Position numbers and translations under genes: made by a program. Under the pieces are notes generated by a model. It had not been told where the DNA came from and made no database searches. It was given only the letters and a program-made list of their open reading frames with translations. This document shows, one piece after another, positions 960-29,169 of a stretch of 32,770 nt of DNA; positions within the stretch are counted from its first letter, which is position 1; each line of letters starts with the position of its first letter. The stretch covers positions 811,951 through 844,720 of the forward strand of contig RDEW01000003.1 of NCBI GenBank assembly GCA_011109175.1. Reading direction: 5' to 3'. The stretch comes from Dicyema japonicum. Taxonomy: Eukaryota > Animalia > Dicyemida.

Positions 960-2030
960 TGAAAAATGATTCTGGAATAAAGGTTCCCGCATAAAAGAAA
1001 ACGGTCTCTATTTTTTGGAACAACTTAATACCATTAATTCAGTATCTTTCGATGTGTCTACGATATAAAATACCTTGAAAAAAACTGATATCAGAATATT
1101 AAAACTCTTTACTGAAAGCGGTTCAAGATCCCGGGCTCGACCTCCACCTTGTGGATCTGGGAAGACTTAGATAGCTGAGGTTATTCTATTCTCATTTAAG
1201 AGAGTGAACCTCAACTAGTATAATTTCTATATATAACGAAAGCATCATGGGTACTCTATAGGTCGACGTCTTGTATGAATCTTTTAGATAATTTTTTTAG
1301 TGAAATTGGGATTATAGTCTGCAATTAGTCCTCTTGAAATGTTTTTCTCGTCGGCACTGAGGATGATTTTATTAAAAAATTTCACTGTGGCGTCAAACGA
1401 TTTGAAATTCTCAACGGAAAAGTCAGATAGAAATTTTTCTGTTTCTTCTCTGAATGAATCCCATTTTGCACATTTGTAATTCGTTAGTTTTCCGATGTCT
1501 AACAATAGGCGAGAGTAGTTCGATTGACAGTAGAATTGGATTTATGGTCCGAGTGTAGGTCATATACAATTCTCCAAGATATCGCCGAAGATAGTGATGG
1601 AGAACATTTGTTGTCAGCATGTGATCGTCATCTTCAAACAGAGCTCGTGTCTGAGCGTAAGTATCGAAGAATGGAATAGATTTGTATATGAGTATGAGAA
1701 CACCGCCTCCTCTGTTTGAATTCGGTCGATCACGGCGGACAATTGAGTAGTCTGTAGTGTGGAAGCGCTGACTTTCTTGATAGTTTCGTTTCCTGTAGCA
1801 TGGCAACATCAATTTTGTGAGAAGTTAGAAATGCAAAAAGTTCATTTGATTTGTGTGTGAGGCCGTTTATGTTAAATTGCATGATGTTAAGGAATTTCCC
1901 GTTTTTATGGGGCCCGGGGTTCTGTTCGATGTCCCCAGCTAGGATTAGGAGTAGCCAATCCGATCTTTGAGAGCGAAAGATACGCGCCCGCTCAATTACC
2001 GCCATCATCCAGTCAACTTCCAGAGGTCGT
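960..2030 (-). mobile_element. Decayed APE-type non-LTR retrotransposon (I/Ingi-like): 2A-like peptide, endonuclease and linker
   Basis: Three frameshifted ORFs join into an endonuclease (LNIMQFNINGL..IDVAMLQETKL; YSIVRRDRPNSNRGGGVLILI) and a post-EN linker (TNYKCAKWDSFREE..ISRG..DYNP). Weak RT-start similarity continues to about 960 and possibly about 730. Confidence 0.85.
1910..1936 (-). other. 2A-like ribosome-skipping motif GDIEQNPGP
   Basis: DWLLLILAGDIEQNPGP is in frame with and directly upstream of the endonuclease; it matches the D-[V/I]-E-x-NPGP consensus with a Leu-rich lead-in. Confidence 0.9.
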
Positions 2031-2187
2031 TGAAAAGGTTGACAAGGTATTGGAAGTGGTTCTTTTAGTTGTCAGTTTAATACGGGCATCCAATTTTCTC
2101 CACGTGAAGGTGAACCACATCGAAAATTTGAGATGGTGAATCACATGACGCATCAAACAAAATTTAAATTTAAAAAATTAGATTTTT

Positions 2188-10129: not shown

Positions 10130-11030
10130 TTCATCGCTGTTATTGTTTCCAAACGAGAATAGGTACATTTTACTCCGTCGTATATATTATCGTCATCATT
10201 TACTACATTTTCAGTAATTATATTTAATTATGTTATCTAAACTCTCCAATTCATTATTCACCAATGAGAGAGTTTGAAAACGACATTCATCAATTTTCTT
10301 CCAACAATTAGTAATTGATTCAGAGTGTATTTGTTGCCATGTCTTCTCAACAATAATGATTATTTGTCTGAGATTTACTTGCTTTAAATTAAACATTGTA
10401 AACTTATCATCCTCAAAAGATAGGGTAAAATCCATCAAATTATTTAAATAATTGGATTTGAACGATTTAATAACTCCCATATCTAAGGGTTGAATTAATG
10501 ATGTTGCATTTTGGCAGAAAAAATAGCTCAATGTTAGAAAAATGATTAGTCTTGTGACTACTTGCATTGTCAAGCAAAAGGACAATTTTTCGGTTGTGTT
10601 GAATCATTTCTTCGTTGACAATGTTCAACCGAGTAATAAATATATCAGATGTCATCCAACAATTTTTAGAAAACGAATATAAAACTCCGTGCTCTTCAGG
10701 GTTAAAATTTTTCATACAAAGTGGAGATTTATATTTTTCTATTAATAATGGTTCAATTTTTCGCCACAAGCACTGACCGACAAAAGAATAGTGATTTTTT
10801 CTTTACTCCTTTTAATTCCAAAACAATCTTTTGATTGTACGGACCCATTATTTATAAAGTTCATATAATTTTGTTTGATTCTAGATACTGCTCCTAAACA
10901 ATAGAATTATCAGATAACCTTTACTAATTTTATACTTTTTGACAATATCTCGTTCGCTCATGAGACAATTTTTGTTGATTTCTTGGGCAATTTTAAGCTT
11001 TAACTCCAGAGTAAGCTTCCTCACCATCAC
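10130..11030 (-). mobile_element. Internally deleted Tigger-family transposon
   Basis: MVRKLTLELKLKIAQ (HTH); KRSKEKITILL; NCWMTSDIF; VLLLDNASSH; TSLIQPLDMGVIKSFK; TNCWKK. Confidence 0.9.
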
Positions 11031-16297: not shown

Positions 16298-16574
16298 CTG
16301 TAAAGAATCTCTTTTCCTGCCCAACCGAACCTCTGGCTGCCTCGAACTGGCGCTAGGCAGATCCCTAAAATCCATATACGAATTAGCCACCAAAGAATAA
16401 GTTCTAAATTCAAAAGTATAAGATTGAAAAATTAATATTAAATAAATTATTAAAAAAATAATATTTAAATTATATAAAAAATTCCGCTGGTAATACGTAT
16501 GGATATAACAAGACAGTGTAATAATAGTCAAATAGCTACAGAAATTGTCTCTATTATAAATTAAAGCATAGTGG

Positions 16575-22519: not shown

Positions 22520-23222
22520 TTGAAAGACGGAAGATGTAAGAAGGTTTGCCTGCCTCAAAACAGCCAGTTGTCACTCGACGGGGGCCTGGATGAACGCTTA
22601 TCTATCTGCCGAAATTGGAAATCTGTTGGATGATGAGGCTGTGAGAATAGCTACCTCGCTTCGTCTTGATCTTAAATTGTGTGCCGAAAGAAAATGACCC
22701 TGTGGACGTTGGATCGATCCTTTTGGTTATCAACCCTTGTCATGCAAGATGAGTGCGGGTCGTTTCCCCAGGCACTCCTGTCTTAACTCGACATTAAAGA
22801 ATTCCCTTGCCTCTGCTGGACACTATTGCCTGTTAGAACCTGCTGGTCTTTCCCGAAGCGATGGAAAACGCCTGATGGGATGACGACTTTTCCATTCGCT
22901 AAACGGACGAAACCTGATTTGGGACGCGACGTGTGTTGATACTTATTCCCCGTCTAATTTGGTTGCTTCTGCTTCAGACTCAGGACATGCTTCAAGCAGG
23001 CCGAGGAACGAAAGAGGAGGAAGTACCAGAGAATTTCGGAGGAGTATCTTTTGTTCCATTCGCGGTGGAAACGTCAGGAATCCTTGGCCCCAAGCAGATG
23101 ATTGGTCGTAAGATCGGCTCCATGATTCAAGCTGTGACCAAGGATCCGCGAGAGACTGGTTGGTTCGAGAACGTATCTCGTTGGCTATTGTTAGGGGAAA
23201 TAGCATGGCCATTCAGATGCCT
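22520..23222 (+). mobile_element. CRE-clade C-terminal zinc-binding/RLE domain and 3' end
   Basis: GAWMNA..LSCKMSAGRFPRH..EPAGLSRSDGKR/PDGMT..LIWDATCVDT..FVPFAVETSG..RERISLAIVRGN. Confidence 0.92.
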
Positions 23223-23384
23223 TAATTTAATTTTTATTCATTTGATAATAAAACATATAAAGTCTATATAAAAAATATATTAATTTAAATATCAAGTTTT
23301 TTAGAAGACTTCCTCGATCATCACATTTTGTTATATGCTGTTTACGTTTGCTTAGTACAACTCGAGTCTTCGAGCCAAGGTTAA

Positions 23385-23640
23385 AAGTAAAAAAAAACAT
23401 GTAACCTCTCTGAAATAAGGTCCAACGTTATAAACATGGTGAACAAGGTCCTCCATACATATAATGTCATATTTTCTTTAAATTTTCAACATAACAACCA
23501 AATTATCACTAATCATAGCATTATTTGTAATTGGCTGACTGACTTCCAATGATCTTCATCGCTTATAAACAAGGTTCCAAAAAAAAAGATCCACGACGAT
23601 TACGAGTTTACAGTTTTTTAGCGAAACTTCGATCGCTCAT
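23385..23640 (-). pseudogene. RPL7: 60S ribosomal protein L7 (uL30) pseudogene fragment, internally deleted
   Basis: LVYKR..QPITNNAMISDNL..KYDIICMEDLVHHVYNVGPYFREV; a 22-nt gt..ag segment lies between DNL and KYD but is one base out of frame. Confidence 0.8.
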
Positions 23641-23659
23641 TTATAAAGTAGGTTTTTTT

Positions 23660-23975
23660 AATGAATAATAATAATAGCCTTTTCACGAGAGCCATAATAT
23701 CTATAGCTCCGCATAGGGAGGACACACACTTTATTTAAGTAAAGAACAGTTATTTTTAACTAATCGCAGAACCAAGATCACTTCTTTTTTTCTTTTTCTT
23801 GTGTGTGGGTCCTTTCTAGACAATCCAGTTCCGCAGTGAGTATCCACTGATGACGGCGTCACTCGTCAAACCCTTTTGGCATCGTAGATGTGTGGAACCT
23901 TCCACCAGGTGAACAGCAGCGATAATCGAACCCGTGACCTAAGCCACTTTAGCCCGACACATAATCTAGAGAGTC
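23660..23975 (-). mobile_element. tRNA-derived SINE, near-complete copy
   Basis: B box GGTTCGATT (23924-23932), conserved core and an (ATT)n tail. Confidence 0.82.
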
Positions 23976-24424
23976 CGATTAAAATAAATAATGAACGATT
24001 TTGGTAAAGGTAAAATTCTTTTTGAAGCGTGAAACCATAAATATGATGTACCTTTGCTGATTTTATATTTGTCTTTCATACAATTTACTTTCATGTGGAT
24101 GAGCATACAAAGTTATGCAATGTTGGAGCTTTGTAGACGCTGTCAGAGTCAATTGGTTTCGGAGACAGAAAGGTTTTAAAAGTAACACAACAGATACACT
24201 TTTTTAGTAGGCACCTTCTGAATGAACTCTTTTTGAATTGTTCTTGTAATTTCATTTATGTTCAAAAAACTCACATGTGGTGTACAAACAAAGTTGATCT
24301 GACTTTGGCTTGTGAGCGTAATCGTTCTTTATGAACATGCGTGTCAGCCCTATTCTAATATTTGGTGATTAGTACTATCACTCGTGTCAAGTTATAAGTT
24401 CGATTCCCACAATGATCCCCTAAT

Positions 24425-25210
24425 TAATGACAAACCCTAGTGTTCCAGTGCAAACAGAGATCTCGAAGTCCTTTTCTATCCAGAGATAGACTGTTCATGT
24501 CGTAGGTGTCCAATTCCTGCATTGACAAGAGGTTGGTAAAAATTTTATGAAGAGTTCGAGGACCCAAACGTGGTCCTTGAGTTCAAAAACCGGGTGAATC
24601 ATAAAATAAGCCACTACAATACAAACCATTTGGTAGGTCTTAACAATCAGAAATCTCACAAGATTCCAATCAGAAGAAAAAAAAGTTTATCGGGGAATTC
24701 GAGGAAGGATAGTGTTTACCTTCTTTAGTAATGTATATATCATGGAGTATCAGTGGCATCACCGAGTGCCATTTACCTATTCTATTTGTTAACAAAACCT
24801 TCTCGGTTATTATACGGAATGAAACAAGTCGATAAGTGTTTTTTGAAAGAATCTTTTAAAATGAAGAGTGCAGGTTAGTTAAATGTTGGAATACAGATTA
24901 AAATTGAGGTTATCTAGAACTCATCAAGTTCGAGCACATCTACGGTACCTTTGGTTCCCCATCGTAAATAACAAGTTTCACAGCAATCACTGTTTTGGAT
25001 TAAATAAAGGAAAAGAGGAATATGATATCTCATTGACCCAAGTAATCATATTTATTTACCATGGACTAATGATAAACTTAAATATATGTTTTATAATATT
25101 CATTATTGAAGAAAACAAAAAGAAATGTTTTGACGATAACTGTTGTGTTATATGTCTATCAAACTCTGACGCCTCCAACTTACATATTAACCTACACTGC
25201 CATCATTAAA
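24425..25210 (+). pseudogene. RPUSD2: RluA-family pseudouridine synthase (RPUSD2-like) pseudogene
   Basis: DKP/SVPV; IGEF..ECHLPILFV..VFFERIF..LVKC; RTHQVRAHLRYLWFPIVN; C-terminal DDNCCVIC..NLHINLH. Contains stops and decayed intron-like segments. Confidence 0.72.
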
Positions 25211-25333
25211 TAATTACTACAGTCTCTCGACTTTTATATTTACTCTGAACCCCCGTTTAACTAATAGAAAGCATTAAACTAATATAATTATAAACTATTT
25301 ATGCACGTTGTATCATCAGAATAAACACATTTG

Positions 25334-26660
25334 TTAATCTATAATCAAAAAAGTAGATAACCTTCTGTCGTTCCCTCTCCCAAATCATAACTAGATTTGG
25401 AGTTAATCCGTTTTTCTCGAGCCATTTTCTTAGCTCGATTTTTACGAATAACATCTACAATGATGTGTAAACAAACCTTCGAATGATGGCTTTGATATTC
25501 CCACAATCTCCGTACCACCTATATTTTAATCAACAACAAACGTCCACTGTTCAGATACTCTATCTTTTCACCATTAAGAGTATCCAAACCTACAACCCTT
25601 ACTCTTTTAGATCTTCTATGTCCAAGGGGTCCTATCTCTGGGATCACTATCCTTCCCCGAATTCCCCGATTAGACAATACTTAAAATATAAAAAACGGAC
25701 AACCTCAATTATTCCACGAAATCTCTTTACCATTTCATCATAGTTTTCTAATTTCGTGAGTTTGATCATTGAATCATTCACTTTACGTCTTCTTTGTTTT
25801 TTATTATATTTTGGCTAAAATGAGCACAAATAAACTCTAATATTTTTCATATCACTCATCTTTATGTCAGTCATGACTTGTGCGTCTTTACAAGAAACAC
25901 TACAGTTAGTTAATTTAATACATTTTCTTATTGGGAATATTCCGAACAGTTGAATGTTCATTAACATCTGAGTGAATTGGCTTATCACAAGACATTGAAC
26001 TTTTCATTATCTTTGGTATAACCATTCTATCATCTGGACTTCCGACATTCCTTATAGAACTCACTAATACAACATAAATATGAATGGAACCTCTGGGGAC
26101 AATAGAGTCATCCTCGATATTTTCCACTATCGTCTCTCTTCCAATATTATCATCCATAGTCTCCACCAGCATAGTATTCGCCCCAGTATTATCTTCTATA
26201 GTCTCCTCTAATAGGGTACCTTTCCTAATATTCTTCTCTGTGTATCTTTCATTTCTTTGGTAATTTATTTTTTCCAAATATGCAGACTTTCTAGGAATTA
26301 AAACATCTTGTAGAGAAGACATCGAAGGTGATAGTATCCTAGTATCCCCACGACTTTCGATTTTGTTAGAAAATAAATTCAACCATTGGATCTAAATATT
26401 ATAAATAAGAATACAAAAGAAGGATCGTTATTTCGGGGATCTATTATTTTATTGGAAGTTTCATCACTGTCGACAGGGGTACTGCAGTAATTGGCGTAAT
26501 GTTTATTAACAAGTTCTTGTTCATCATCAGTAATACCTGTAAATGTGAATAATATTAGTTACTGTCAAGACGTATCAGTTTGTGTCTCCTTGCTAATCTT
26601 CCATTTCTATATTTTTTAACACGCTCACTGTCTCTCATCACAACAGAAAATAATGTCCGC
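25334..26660 (-). pseudogene. 5'-incomplete multi-exon host gene with ten 21-27 nt introns and a CENP-C-like motif, frameshifted by one 26-nt insertion
   Basis: Introns 26607-26628, 26537-26562, 26392-26414, 26064-26090, 25900-25921, 25815-25835, 25680-25703, 25519-25541, 25455-25476 and 25339-25361. With 25645-25670 also removed, the exons total 1068 nt (355 aa plus stop) with no internal stop. Motif RRSKRVRVVGLDTLNGEKIEY at 25555-25617. Confidence 0.8.
26100..26220 (-). repeat. Three degenerate coding tandem repeats of about 42 bp (14 aa)
   Basis: TLLEETIEDNTGAN / TMLVETMDDNIGRE / TIVENIEDDSIVP. Confidence 0.7.
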
Positions 26661-26769
26661 CTAATTTTATTTATTTTATTAATTATTTTTATTTATTTAT
26701 TTGACATTAATTAGTAATTTTTACTAATGAAGACTTGGCTACGGGACGAGTGCTATTCTAATGTTCCCA

Positions 26770-26875
26770 GATTTCTTTAATCATGTGTATTGATGTTGAA
26801 CCTAACCAGGACCCGTGTCATTTCAGGGAATGTTGAAGATACTCCAGTTGAGCATAAACGAACTTTCCAAAAAAA
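26770..26875 (+). mobile_element. Second, decayed 2A-like peptide plus endonuclease start of an APE LINE
   Basis: LIMCIDVEPN(1-nt deletion)GP followed by MLKILQLSINELSKK; same layout as 1730-2008. Confidence 0.65.
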
Positions 26876-26901
26876 TGTGTTGATTTACACACATTTTTTA
26901 G

Positions 26902-26988
26902 CTTGAGGCAGTGCAAACTTCGGACCTTTCAAGATGGCCTCGGCTTCAAATCTTTTGCCGAAATTTCGCTCCTTGCCTTACTTTTTCG
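26902..26988. repeat. Dispersed repeat of about 88 bp, copy 1
   Basis: cttgaggcagtgcaa..cggacctttcaagatgg..tcaaat..gccgaaatttc..ctccttg, closely similar to 27877-27965. Confidence 0.85.
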
Positions 26989-27179
26989 CAATCGTTGTGT
27001 GGACGTTTTTTGGCACTCACCAGAAAGAGTTAAGATAACCTCGGATTGAAATTCTTAAGGTGCTATTCAGCTCAAACTCAAAGTGATTTTTTGTCTCCTG
27101 TGAGAGCATCAGGCTTCATAATAAATTTGTTCGACAAAGATATACTAAAACACGTGTTTACTTGGTTCGTTTCTTGATA

Positions 27180-27800
27180 TCCGCAATTGCTTCCTACACA
27201 CCAAATTGTTTATTAAATATGCTTGCCTTCGAGAAGACAAAGAAATCTTAGATATGGATATTGGCTACCCTATCGTATGGTTCGGACAGCAGAGTTGTCT
27301 TCGAAGATAATGTTGTGTGTTCTCTTTGGAGACTAGTGTGTTGGAGCACTCCTTTTTGACCTGACTGTGAATGATGTCGCATGCAATGTGCTTTCTCTAT
27401 TAAACGTATGGTATATGGATGAAGTGGAGGCCCTTATGACTCCGTCTTGAAAGACATCTATGTCATTAACAACTCTAAGGAGTCTTTGATTATCAACATC
27501 TCTATGTCCGCCCAAGATTTAGTTTTCGTTGCCGGAGCTTTAGAGATAAGTTTATGGGATAAAGGATCGGGAAGTGGGTGAATTTTTATTCCTTAAGATT
27601 TGCTTTGGTGACGACGGAGAGCTCTTTCCTCGAAGGAATCTCTGCTACACTCTACATCAAAGAAGCTCTAAGGATTTTAAGGTTGAATCGACGATGCTTA
27701 GGATATCCCATGCCAAAGATCCTTGATTCACACATGGTGTTCTTCCCGCTGAAAAAATGTCTTTCTTACTCTTTGTTCTGGGATACTCGTCATCCTTTAA
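27180..27800 (+). mobile_element. CRE-clade reverse transcriptase fragment
   Basis: YGSDSRVVF..GALLFDLTVNDV..LNVWYMDE (YLDD-equivalent)..LDSHMVFFPLKKCLS. Confidence 0.75.
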
Positions 27801-27876
27801 GCACAGGGACATTCTAAACGCCATCAACTCAAATCCTTAGTGGAGGGAAGTTTTTTATTTAGCTCAACGATCTAGT

Positions 27877-27965
27877 CTTGAGGCAGTGCAATCCCCGGAC
27901 CTTTCAAGATGGTCTAGGCCTCAAATATTTGGCCGAAATTTCCCTCCTTGTTTTTCTTTTTTCGT
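27877..27965. repeat. Dispersed repeat of about 88 bp, copy 2
   Basis: Direct repeat of 26902-26988. Confidence 0.85.
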
Positions 27966-28129
27966 GTGGTTCATTTGTTTGCCTTTCGTCGAGATTTTTC
28001 TCAACATTTTAAGATCTTTTCTTGAACGTTTATCTCTAACTAGTCACGTAGCCGATATATTAGGGATAGATTTGTAGTGGGTGAACAATTGAGAAATGAT
28101 AATATGAACTTTCGTGTATTAATCTCAAA

Positions 28130-28300
28130 CTTGGAATGCTGACAGTTACATGGCAGATGGAATAATCATCTTTTTCGCTGCTGGGAATCACCTATTATGG
28201 AATGTAACGTATATGAACAACTTCGCTTCAAATAACCTCCTTCAGAGTGTTGCCAATACCAGTTGAGCTCTGGTAGGTTGAAATATTGCTGAAAGTATGC
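28130..28300 (+). mobile_element. Degraded CRE RLE fragment
   Basis: ADGIIIFFAAGNHLLWNVTYMNNFASNNL parallels PDGMT..G..LIWDAT. Confidence 0.5.
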
Positions 28301-28329
28301 TAACCTTTTGGTGAGCATAATGAAAGCTA

Positions 28330-28640
28330 TGGTACTTATAGCACCGCATAGGTAGGACACAGATTTTATTTTAGAGTAAGGTCACGTAGTTATTTTAACT
28401 AAACATGGAAAAATAGATAAAGCACGTTCATGACTTTTTCTTTTTGTTGGGTGTGAGCCCTTGTAAACAATCTGGTACCGAGTAAGGTATCAATGATAAT
28501 GACGTCTTTTGTCAAAACAAGAACCACCATTTGTGGGTTAGACTCTCTGTCGGGATGGACAGCACCAAGATTCGAACATTTGGATTTTGTCCGAGATTTG
28601 AACACTGCGCAATACTCATGGCCAGAATAATATTTACTAT
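28330..28640 (-). mobile_element. Diverged SINE copy
   Basis: tatagcaccgcataggtaggacacag..gttattttaactaa..tttttctttttgttgggtgtgagccc aligns with the 23.7 kb copy; GTTCGAATC on the minus strand. Confidence 0.7.
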
Positions 28641-29169
28641 CAGCATCACACGTGATCTTCAGAGTTCTTTCAATTTTGGGCTGGACGAGGTTCAAACCGG
28701 ATTTTATGTTTCCTAAATCTCCCGAGTCCTTAACCTAGTCAATGCTCAATAGAAAAAAGGAAGATGAAGTTTCCATAAATCATGAAGCTAATTGTACATT
28801 TCGTTTGATACAATAGAATCAACTAATTAAAATATCTGCAACTTACGAATCTTTCCAAAGTCATACACAAGCCCACTTAGAACCAAGATGTTGGTACTTC
28901 AAAACGTAGCAGTTATAAAAATTCACAAGAAATGATCAATTGGAAAATATAATGGTGTTATTTGGTGCCATCCTATTCTTAGACGTGAACCAAGTGACGC
29001 TGAGTTAATACCATCAGGACAGAGAAGATAAAACAGAATCCTTCACTCTTTTGTCAGTGGTGAATTGAACTTATATAAATAATATTATTGTTAGGTATTT
29101 GCAACAAAACCACCTACATTCATGTTGTATCGTCTATGTTCAAGTTTATCAGTGTTTTGAGAGTAACGG

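Follow-up and report, generated by a model that had tools for sequence, protein, structure and literature searches.

The introns of Dicyema are uniformly short, 26.2 ± 1.9 nt (Aruga et al., 2007; PMC2222250), and the genome of D. japonicum, with its 67.5 Mb, 36.7% GC, 49% repeats and abundant LINEs, has 6.2 introns per gene, the mean intron being 38 bp (Lu et al., 2019; PMC6736024). Among 51 animals, introns under 30 bp were seen only in myxobolid myxozoans and D. japonicum, and the splice signals of these micro-introns are reduced to GTa...AG (Hadjez et al., 2026; PMC13644364). Micro-introns are a published hallmark of D. japonicum.

The locus described here lies in a stretch of 32,770 nt of D. 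japonicum DNA, which was analysed as a whole and is called the window below. At about 35% GC and with a heavy load of LINE and DDE transposons, it matches the published genome of the species; scanning for Rfam families and tRNAs yielded nothing, and the window contains no conserved gene for calibrating introns, the DEP-like ORF at 16571 being too weak. Our reading of the locus, with a probability of about 0.7, is a micro-intron gene with a divergent CENP-C-like product, which would be one member of a family and is perhaps truncated or defective. An earlier, sequence-only reading of this DNA had proposed a miniaturised splicing system of dicyemid type; this main inference is correct in kind and not new, and, as such splicing has been in print since 2007, with genome-wide confirmation in 2019 and a further study in 2026, no new question arises from it, while at this particular locus we infer splicing from genomic DNA. 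What is left of value is a caution on the recognition of introns by their T-richness, a CENP-C-like product with an unusual motif, and the structure of the fifth junction.

Gene model and predicted product

According to the six-frame translation, a chain of open segments that switch frame extends on the minus strand from about 26690 to about 25340, the longest segment comprising 156 codons (26391-25922). With seven introns of 26, 23, 22, 21, 38, 23, and 22 nt taken out and no sequence edited, 372 codons run uninterrupted from ATG 26638, the first ATG of the open frame, to TGA 25347-25345, and no in-frame stop occurs among them. Every candidate segment is bounded by GT and AG, and the frame is restored at six of the seven junctions by a segment of 21-26 nt, the shortest usable one in each case. 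The features of this model, together with the segments considered as additional introns, are as follows.

26563..26638, minus strand: exon 1 of the 372-codon model, starting at ATG 26638 with MRDSERVKKYRNGRLARRHKLIRLD and ending in phase 1
26537..26562, minus strand: intron 1, 26 nt, GTAACTAAT...TTTACAG, the shortest frame-restoring GT..AG segment at this place, 77% AT
26415..26536, minus strand: exon 2, 122 nt
26392..26414, minus strand: intron 2, 23 nt, GTATTCTTATTTATAATATTTAG, the sole short solution, 87% AT, also found by the composition-only detector
25922..26391, minus strand: exon 3, 470 nt, acidic and repetitive, the 156-codon open frame
26064..26090, minus strand: optional 27-nt intron within exon 3, GTTCCATTCAT...GTATTAG, T-rich, frame-neutral and stop-free
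25900..25921, minus strand: intron 3, 22 nt, GTATTAAATTAACTAACTGTAG, with ACTAAC inside, the sole solution of 20-27 nt at this junction
25836..25899, minus strand: exon 4 of the 372-codon model, 64 nt
25815..25835, minus strand: intron 4, 21 nt, GTTTATTTGTGCTCATTTTAG, whose TAG is an in-frame stop
25718..25814, minus strand: exon 5, reaching down to 25704 with the donor of the 24-nt intron
25680..25717, minus strand: intron 5, either 38 nt (donor GTGGAA, 25717) or a T-rich 24 nt (donor 25703)
25542..25679, minus strand: exon 6, with the CENP-C-like motif; CENP-C chains are its sole PDB matches
about 25617-25555, minus strand: the CENP-C-like motif in exon 6, GHRRSKRVRVVGLDTLNGEKIEY
25519..25541, minus strand: intron 6, 23 nt, GTTTGTTGTTGATTAAAATATAG
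25477..25518, minus strand: exon 7, 42 nt, GTEIVGISKPSFE
25455..25476, minus strand: intron 7, 22 nt, GTTTGTTTACACATCATTGTAG
25345..25454, minus strand: exon 8, with the stop TGA 25347-25345
25339..25361, minus strand: optional last intron, 23 nt, GTTATCTAC...ATTATAG, T-rich and intron-like
26607..26628, minus strand: rejected first "intron", 22 nt, GTGAGCG...ATATAG, not T-rich, leading to a stop if spliced

In this model, the locus would be a protein-coding gene of a micro-intron animal genome, its CDS (26638 to 25345) being split by seven introns (the fifth of them of 38 or 24 nt), with two further introns, of 27 and 23 nt, possible. The predicted intron signals are minimal, GT[A/T]...AG and a T-rich body, and removal would be by the ordinary U2-type spliceosome of the host. 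We accept introns 1-4, 6, and 7 as predicted, and consider the 27-nt and the last 23-nt segments plausible as introns. Splicing of the former would take the hydrophobic GSIHIYVVL out of an acidic stretch; splicing of the latter would change the tail from EGYLLF and stop to D and stop, and, as the protein ends within seven codons either way, the frame is uninformative here. The greater uncertainty that had already been ascribed to these two segments agrees with our results, the former being frame-neutral and the latter altering the final codons only.

The sequence-only reading had listed ten GT..AG segments on the minus strand, and all ten were recovered with the lengths and in the order given:

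26628-26607 (22 nt), 26562-26537 (26), 26414-26392 (23), 26090-26064 (27), 25921-25900 (22), minus strand: segments 1-5
25835-25815 (21 nt), 25703-25680 (24), 25541-25519 (23), 25476-25455 (22), 25361-25339 (23), minus strand: segments 6-10

The donors reported to begin with GTT in six of the ten cases do so, and most acceptors (eight of ten) are TAG. As a count of introns, ten is too high: the first 22-nt segment is rejected, and the 27-, 24-, and final 23-nt ones are not decidable by frame. The first segment is unneeded as an intron, and, with the start at ATG 26638, it must stay in the exon, since its removal creates a stop just after this ATG. The stop-free frame of 355 codons was reproduced in length, as removal of the ten segments and of a 26-nt repeat (25670-25645) leaves 1068 nt, that is, 355 codons and a stop; it opens with ADIIFCC..., with no Met or start codon. 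Taking out this repeat as an insertion is needless, for donor 25717 with the 38-nt intron yields the uninterrupted 372-codon frame from ATG to TGA. Two other points hold well, namely, that the gene is split in such a way that ORF callers would miss it, and that a Paramecium-type code is argued against: the 372-codon model is free of in-frame TAA and TAG codons, hence the code is the standard one. A variant chosen by dynamic programming, with introns of 16-19 nt and a frame-0 tail (MLFVKIELRK...), was rejected, as these introns fall under the published size range and the alignment scores to CENP-C are lower.

Next to the predicted 3' end, an ORF at 24883-25206 on the plus strand converges on the gene, with a partial RING-like CVICLSNSDASNLHINLHCHH at its end and AATAAA at 25321-25326; it has no Pfam match, and may be a neighbour gene whose 3' end abuts that of the gene described here.

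The product would have about 372 residues, with a basic N-terminus, an acidic repetitive middle that has no relatives, a putative CENP-C-like nucleosome-binding motif and a short basic tail, the cupin domain being absent. Exon 6 (25679-25542) matched only CENP-C chains in PDB, namely, chicken 7bxt_K and 7by0_K, with E-values of 0.17-0.19; the spliced C-terminus matched the same two chicken chains and human 7XHN (E-values 0.45-0.82), and these alignments cross junction 6. Pairwise scores to human and chicken CENP-C segments are 54-73, compared to shuffle maxima of 44-57, and none of 2000 shuffles reaches them. The highest pairwise CENP-C score is obtained with the model having introns of 38, 23, and 22 nt; with intron 6 removed, the alignment score is only slightly higher (64 instead of 54 for human, 73 instead of 70 for chicken), and the phmmer score is no higher.

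The motif retains the arginine anchor RR[ST][KN]R.R (GHRRSKRVR here, NVRRTKR(I/T)R in CENP-C) and the "GE...Y" part. The aromatic Tyr-Trp pair is absent from it and replaced by Thr-Leu (LDTLNGEKIEY here, LEYWRGER..Y in CENP-C), and the C-terminal cupin is absent from the ORF, which ends about 67 residues past the motif. Pfam scans of exons 2, 3, 5, and 6-8 yielded nothing, including no SANTA domain (KNL2/M18BP1), and the downstream ORFs on both strands had no Pfam match either. Exon 7 alone retrieved nothing relevant from PDB, and exon 1 alone no kinetochore match; in exon 1, KKYRNGRLARRH, a possible counterpart of the N-terminal segment that binds the Mis12 complex, recalls the human KNGYRRRF.

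The middle exon (156 residues) had no match among 1.84 billion representative proteins, and in the ESM Atlas it retrieved only low-score LRR look-alikes, that is, noise. It contains, at 26140-26260 on the minus strand, an imperfect tandem repeat of three acidic units, each about 13 residues long (EETIEDNTGANTM, VETMDDNIGRETI, and VENIEDDSIVPR), which drew the spurious LRR look-alikes. Judging from the motif, the product is probably a divergent CENP-C-like inner-kinetochore protein, CENP-C-like by alignment while missing two defining features of the family. The literature search for Dicyema together with CENP-C found no papers; hence the gene itself may be undescribed, and it may be the first dicyemid CENP-C-like protein to be described.

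The fifth junction and the putative copies of the locus

Junction 5 has fifteen formal solutions, of which only those of 38, 17, and 29 nt are both short and in frame. The 29-nt solutions are GC-rich, and the 38-nt intron is atypical, beginning with 14 nt of exon-like sequence. The segment of 24 nt (25703-25680) is T-rich and looks like a typical intron, but its use leaves the downstream exon out of frame; at this junction, the composition detector picks the 24/21-nt version. Close to the junction lies one copy of a repeat whose partner is found 930 nt away.

25645..25670, minus strand: gene copy of the 26-nt repeat, coding for NRGIRGRIV in the 372-codon model; the "insertion" of the sequence-only reading
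24689..24714, plus strand: partner copy of the 26-nt repeat, inverted

The copies differ by one mismatch, and two are present in the window, with none expected. The first three bases of the 26-mer, ATC, are repeated right after the gene-side copy. Such an arrangement resembles a templated insertion with nearby DNA as its source. At each of the two copies of the 26-mer, the read contigs are interrupted. The RGRIVIP encoded by the gene-side copy aligns with RQKIVLP of chicken CENP-C. A donor moved 14 nt upstream would exactly offset a 26-nt insertion, with a net gain of 12 nt. Junction 5 could show whether a frameshifting insertion is tolerated via an alternative donor.

Read contigs (Logan) were compared over 23001-29000. 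Four runs of one sample contain the locus, and they behave as DNA, with even intergenic cover and with contigs unspliced through introns, e.g., over 25396-25666; the contigs of one run add up to 2.2 Gb, and no short joints were listed. Between the left flank, 23976-25415, and the read contigs there is practically no difference. Over 25416-27200, the contigs lie two to five deep, each at single-copy depth, and are 2-5% off the window sequence, with up to five of them, again each at single-copy depth, overlapping the exon with the motif. These observations suggest a small multi-copy family of diverging copies and a boundary of homology or recent duplication at about 25416, inside the last exon. 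The copy described here probably belongs to a small family of recent duplicates, and it could be a truncated or a defective one.

The variable sites were listed for the best-supported differences only, and at the listed sites of the gene the base of the window is found in no read contig. Twelve of the 17 listed differences are nonsynonymous and five synonymous, which is close to the 21% synonymous expected under neutrality. In exon 5, a 1-nt deletion at 25794, carried by about half to two-thirds of the read depth, would frameshift the gene model; 4 nt from it, at 25798, there is a fixed T>C change. Elsewhere in the compared region, 23600-24000 and 28336-28462 contain a very high-copy short repeat, with a summed depth of 10^5-10^6 compared to about 300 for single-copy sequence, and the many contig joints between the two indicate that both are copies of one SINE-like family.

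Taking the junction and the contigs together, it is possible, though we hold it unlikely, that a CENP-C-like gene with micro-introns is present here as a broken copy, either a pseudogene or a defective allele, in which the fifth intron is the T-rich 24-nt segment and the 26-nt templated insertion shifts the frame before the CENP-C motif. The composition of the 24/21-nt segment speaks for such a copy, as do the 26-mer with its near-identical inverted partner and the ATC repeat, which are as in templated-insertion repair, the near-neutral ratio of nonsynonymous to synonymous differences, and the frameshifting allele at 25794. The contigs also suggest several paralogues next to an identical left flank, and a duplication boundary inside the last exon, beyond which there is no cupin exon. 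On the other hand, the 38-nt intron keeps the frame with no editing, the model with this intron scores best, the residues encoded by the repeat align with chicken CENP-C, and the 372 codons are free of stops and of frameshifts except at junction 5. This alternative overlaps with our preferred explanation, since in it, too, the introns are real, and only the copy is dead.

The same contigs bear on a further reading, which appears rather improbable to us, namely, that the assembly at 25416-27200 is a mosaic, a consensus blended from near-identical paralogues, so that its frame breaks and single bases are unreal. It would account for the bases of the window that no contig contains at the listed gene sites, for the almost perfect agreement of the adjoining 23976-25415 with the same runs, and for the up to five contigs of single-copy depth over the motif exon. 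However, Logan contigs drop rare variants, and the absence of a base from them is thus no proof; the list is restricted to the best-supported differences; and blending would more likely leave several frame breaks than one.

Intron-like segments and the chance background

For a gene predicted in this way, the frequency of chance solutions has to be taken into account. A GT..AG segment of 20-27 nt suffices to link 25-29% of neighbouring ORF pairs, in the window and in shuffles alike, and a dynamic programming search that allows GT..AG segments of 18-35 nt yields "spliced ORFs" of 500-1600 nt throughout the window. The antisense strand of a LINE gives a chance chain of six segments (23, 23, 26, 22, 22, and 20 nt), and the extension downstream from exon 3 of our gene is marginally unusual, with p of about 0.01-0.09. 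A leave-one-out test of frame by codon position gave 8/8 for the gene and also 7/7 for the chance chain, and was discarded, because the requirement for a stop-free frame biases it. That no stops remain once short GT..AG segments are taken out is weak evidence here.

The locus as a whole is the best spliced ORF of the window with introns of 20-27 nt, scoring 873/1083, where 200 dinucleotide shuffles reach 420/674 at most. The intron interiors contain 51% T, and the exons 27% (Fisher p = 9e-9), and four chains that stem from chance or from transposons show no such shift in their "introns" (p 0.35-0.65). We also used a detector based on composition only, accepting GT..AG segments of 20-27 nt with T >= 45% and AT >= 70%. 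On the gene strand it found nine segments at seven loci, and on the opposite strand one; five of the seven loci are at frame breaks, and the remaining two correspond to the optional introns (27 nt and 23 nt).

Transposon debris elsewhere in the window comprises a LINE endonuclease fragment (Exo_endo_phos) and pieces of pogo-type DDE_1. The LINE fragment (1285-2177, minus strand) carries the 2A-like peptide GDIEQNPGP at its N-terminus and the beginning of Exo_endo_phos, and has three frame changes, each of which can be bridged by a GT..AG segment of exactly 22 nt; these segments are A-rich, not T-rich, and hence may be due to chance or decay. A candidate micro-intron in the pogo/Tigger-type DDE_1 transposase (10214-10802, minus strand) was rejected, being actually a 1-nt frameshift with two overlapping frames; it falls within FFLP.NATSLIQPLD, and the copy is dead.

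That coding is limited to the 156-codon ORF or absent altogether, and that the GT..AG segments are coincidences of AT-rich DNA with no splicing, is very improbable: the share of ORF pairs joinable at random, the six-segment chain in the LINE, the marginal extension downstream of exon 3 and the uninformative frame test would allow it, but the segments of the gene are T-rich where those of chance chains are not, their lengths stay inside the narrow published range, the 156-codon ORF has no usable start unless exons 1 and 2 are joined to it, the CENP-C motif is found further downstream, in an exon read in the predicted frame, and the whole spliced ORF scores far above shuffles. In practice, stop-free splicing frames arise easily by chance in this AT-rich genome, and T-richness discriminates better.

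Relation to CENP-C and to known micro-intron systems

Like CENP-C of chicken (7BXT/7BY0) and human (7XHN), the predicted product has the pattern "IV.P...P..RR(S/T)KR.R...L....GE...Y" with "G..I.G(I/V)..P" and a basic stretch behind it; outside this block, CENP-C, too, is a long disordered protein that evolves fast. The differences are the Thr-Leu in place of Tyr-Trp, the pair with which CENP-C docks on the CENP-A tail, the lack of the C-terminal cupin in a protein of only about 372 residues, and the weakness of the match (E-values 0.17-0.8). One might speculate, with considerable doubt, that the locus belongs to a small, recently duplicated and fast-evolving dicyemid family of CENP-C-like proteins that has lost the aromatic pair and the cupin dimerisation domain; equally doubtful is the corollary that this copy has been caught just after the 26-nt templated insertion, or was rescued by the shifted donor of the 38-nt intron. 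If true, such a family would point to rewired recognition of centromeric chromatin in a reduced parasite.

As for the introns, the same size class is known in ciliates (Paramecium, 20-35 nt; Stentor, 15-16 nt) and in the Bigelowiella nucleomorph (18-21 nt). Unlike in those systems, the locus is surrounded by remnants of LINE endonuclease and pogo-type DDE transposons, and the runs containing it hold gigabases of other DNA. The myxobolid myxozoans (Henneguya, Thelohanellus, Myxobolus) have a median intron of 22-27 nt and the same reduced signals (PMC13644364), but they belong to a different phylum, and the genome of H. salminicola has 29% GC; the composition of the window and the dates of the read runs, 2017 and 2019, are in better agreement with D. 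japonicum.

Compared to described dicyemid introns, the lengths here center on 22-23 rather than 26 nt, most donors are GTT rather than GTA, and one junction requires either an intron of 38 nt or a repair. In common with them, the predicted introns are GT..AG, several per gene, in a narrow range of the low to mid-twenties, with the signals GT(a)...AG and a few A residues before the AG, in a repeat-rich genome of about 36% GC. The view that introns this short are a dicyemid trait is supported, as both the size and the minimal signals of the predicted introns match the published ones (PMC2222250, PMC6736024, PMC13644364).
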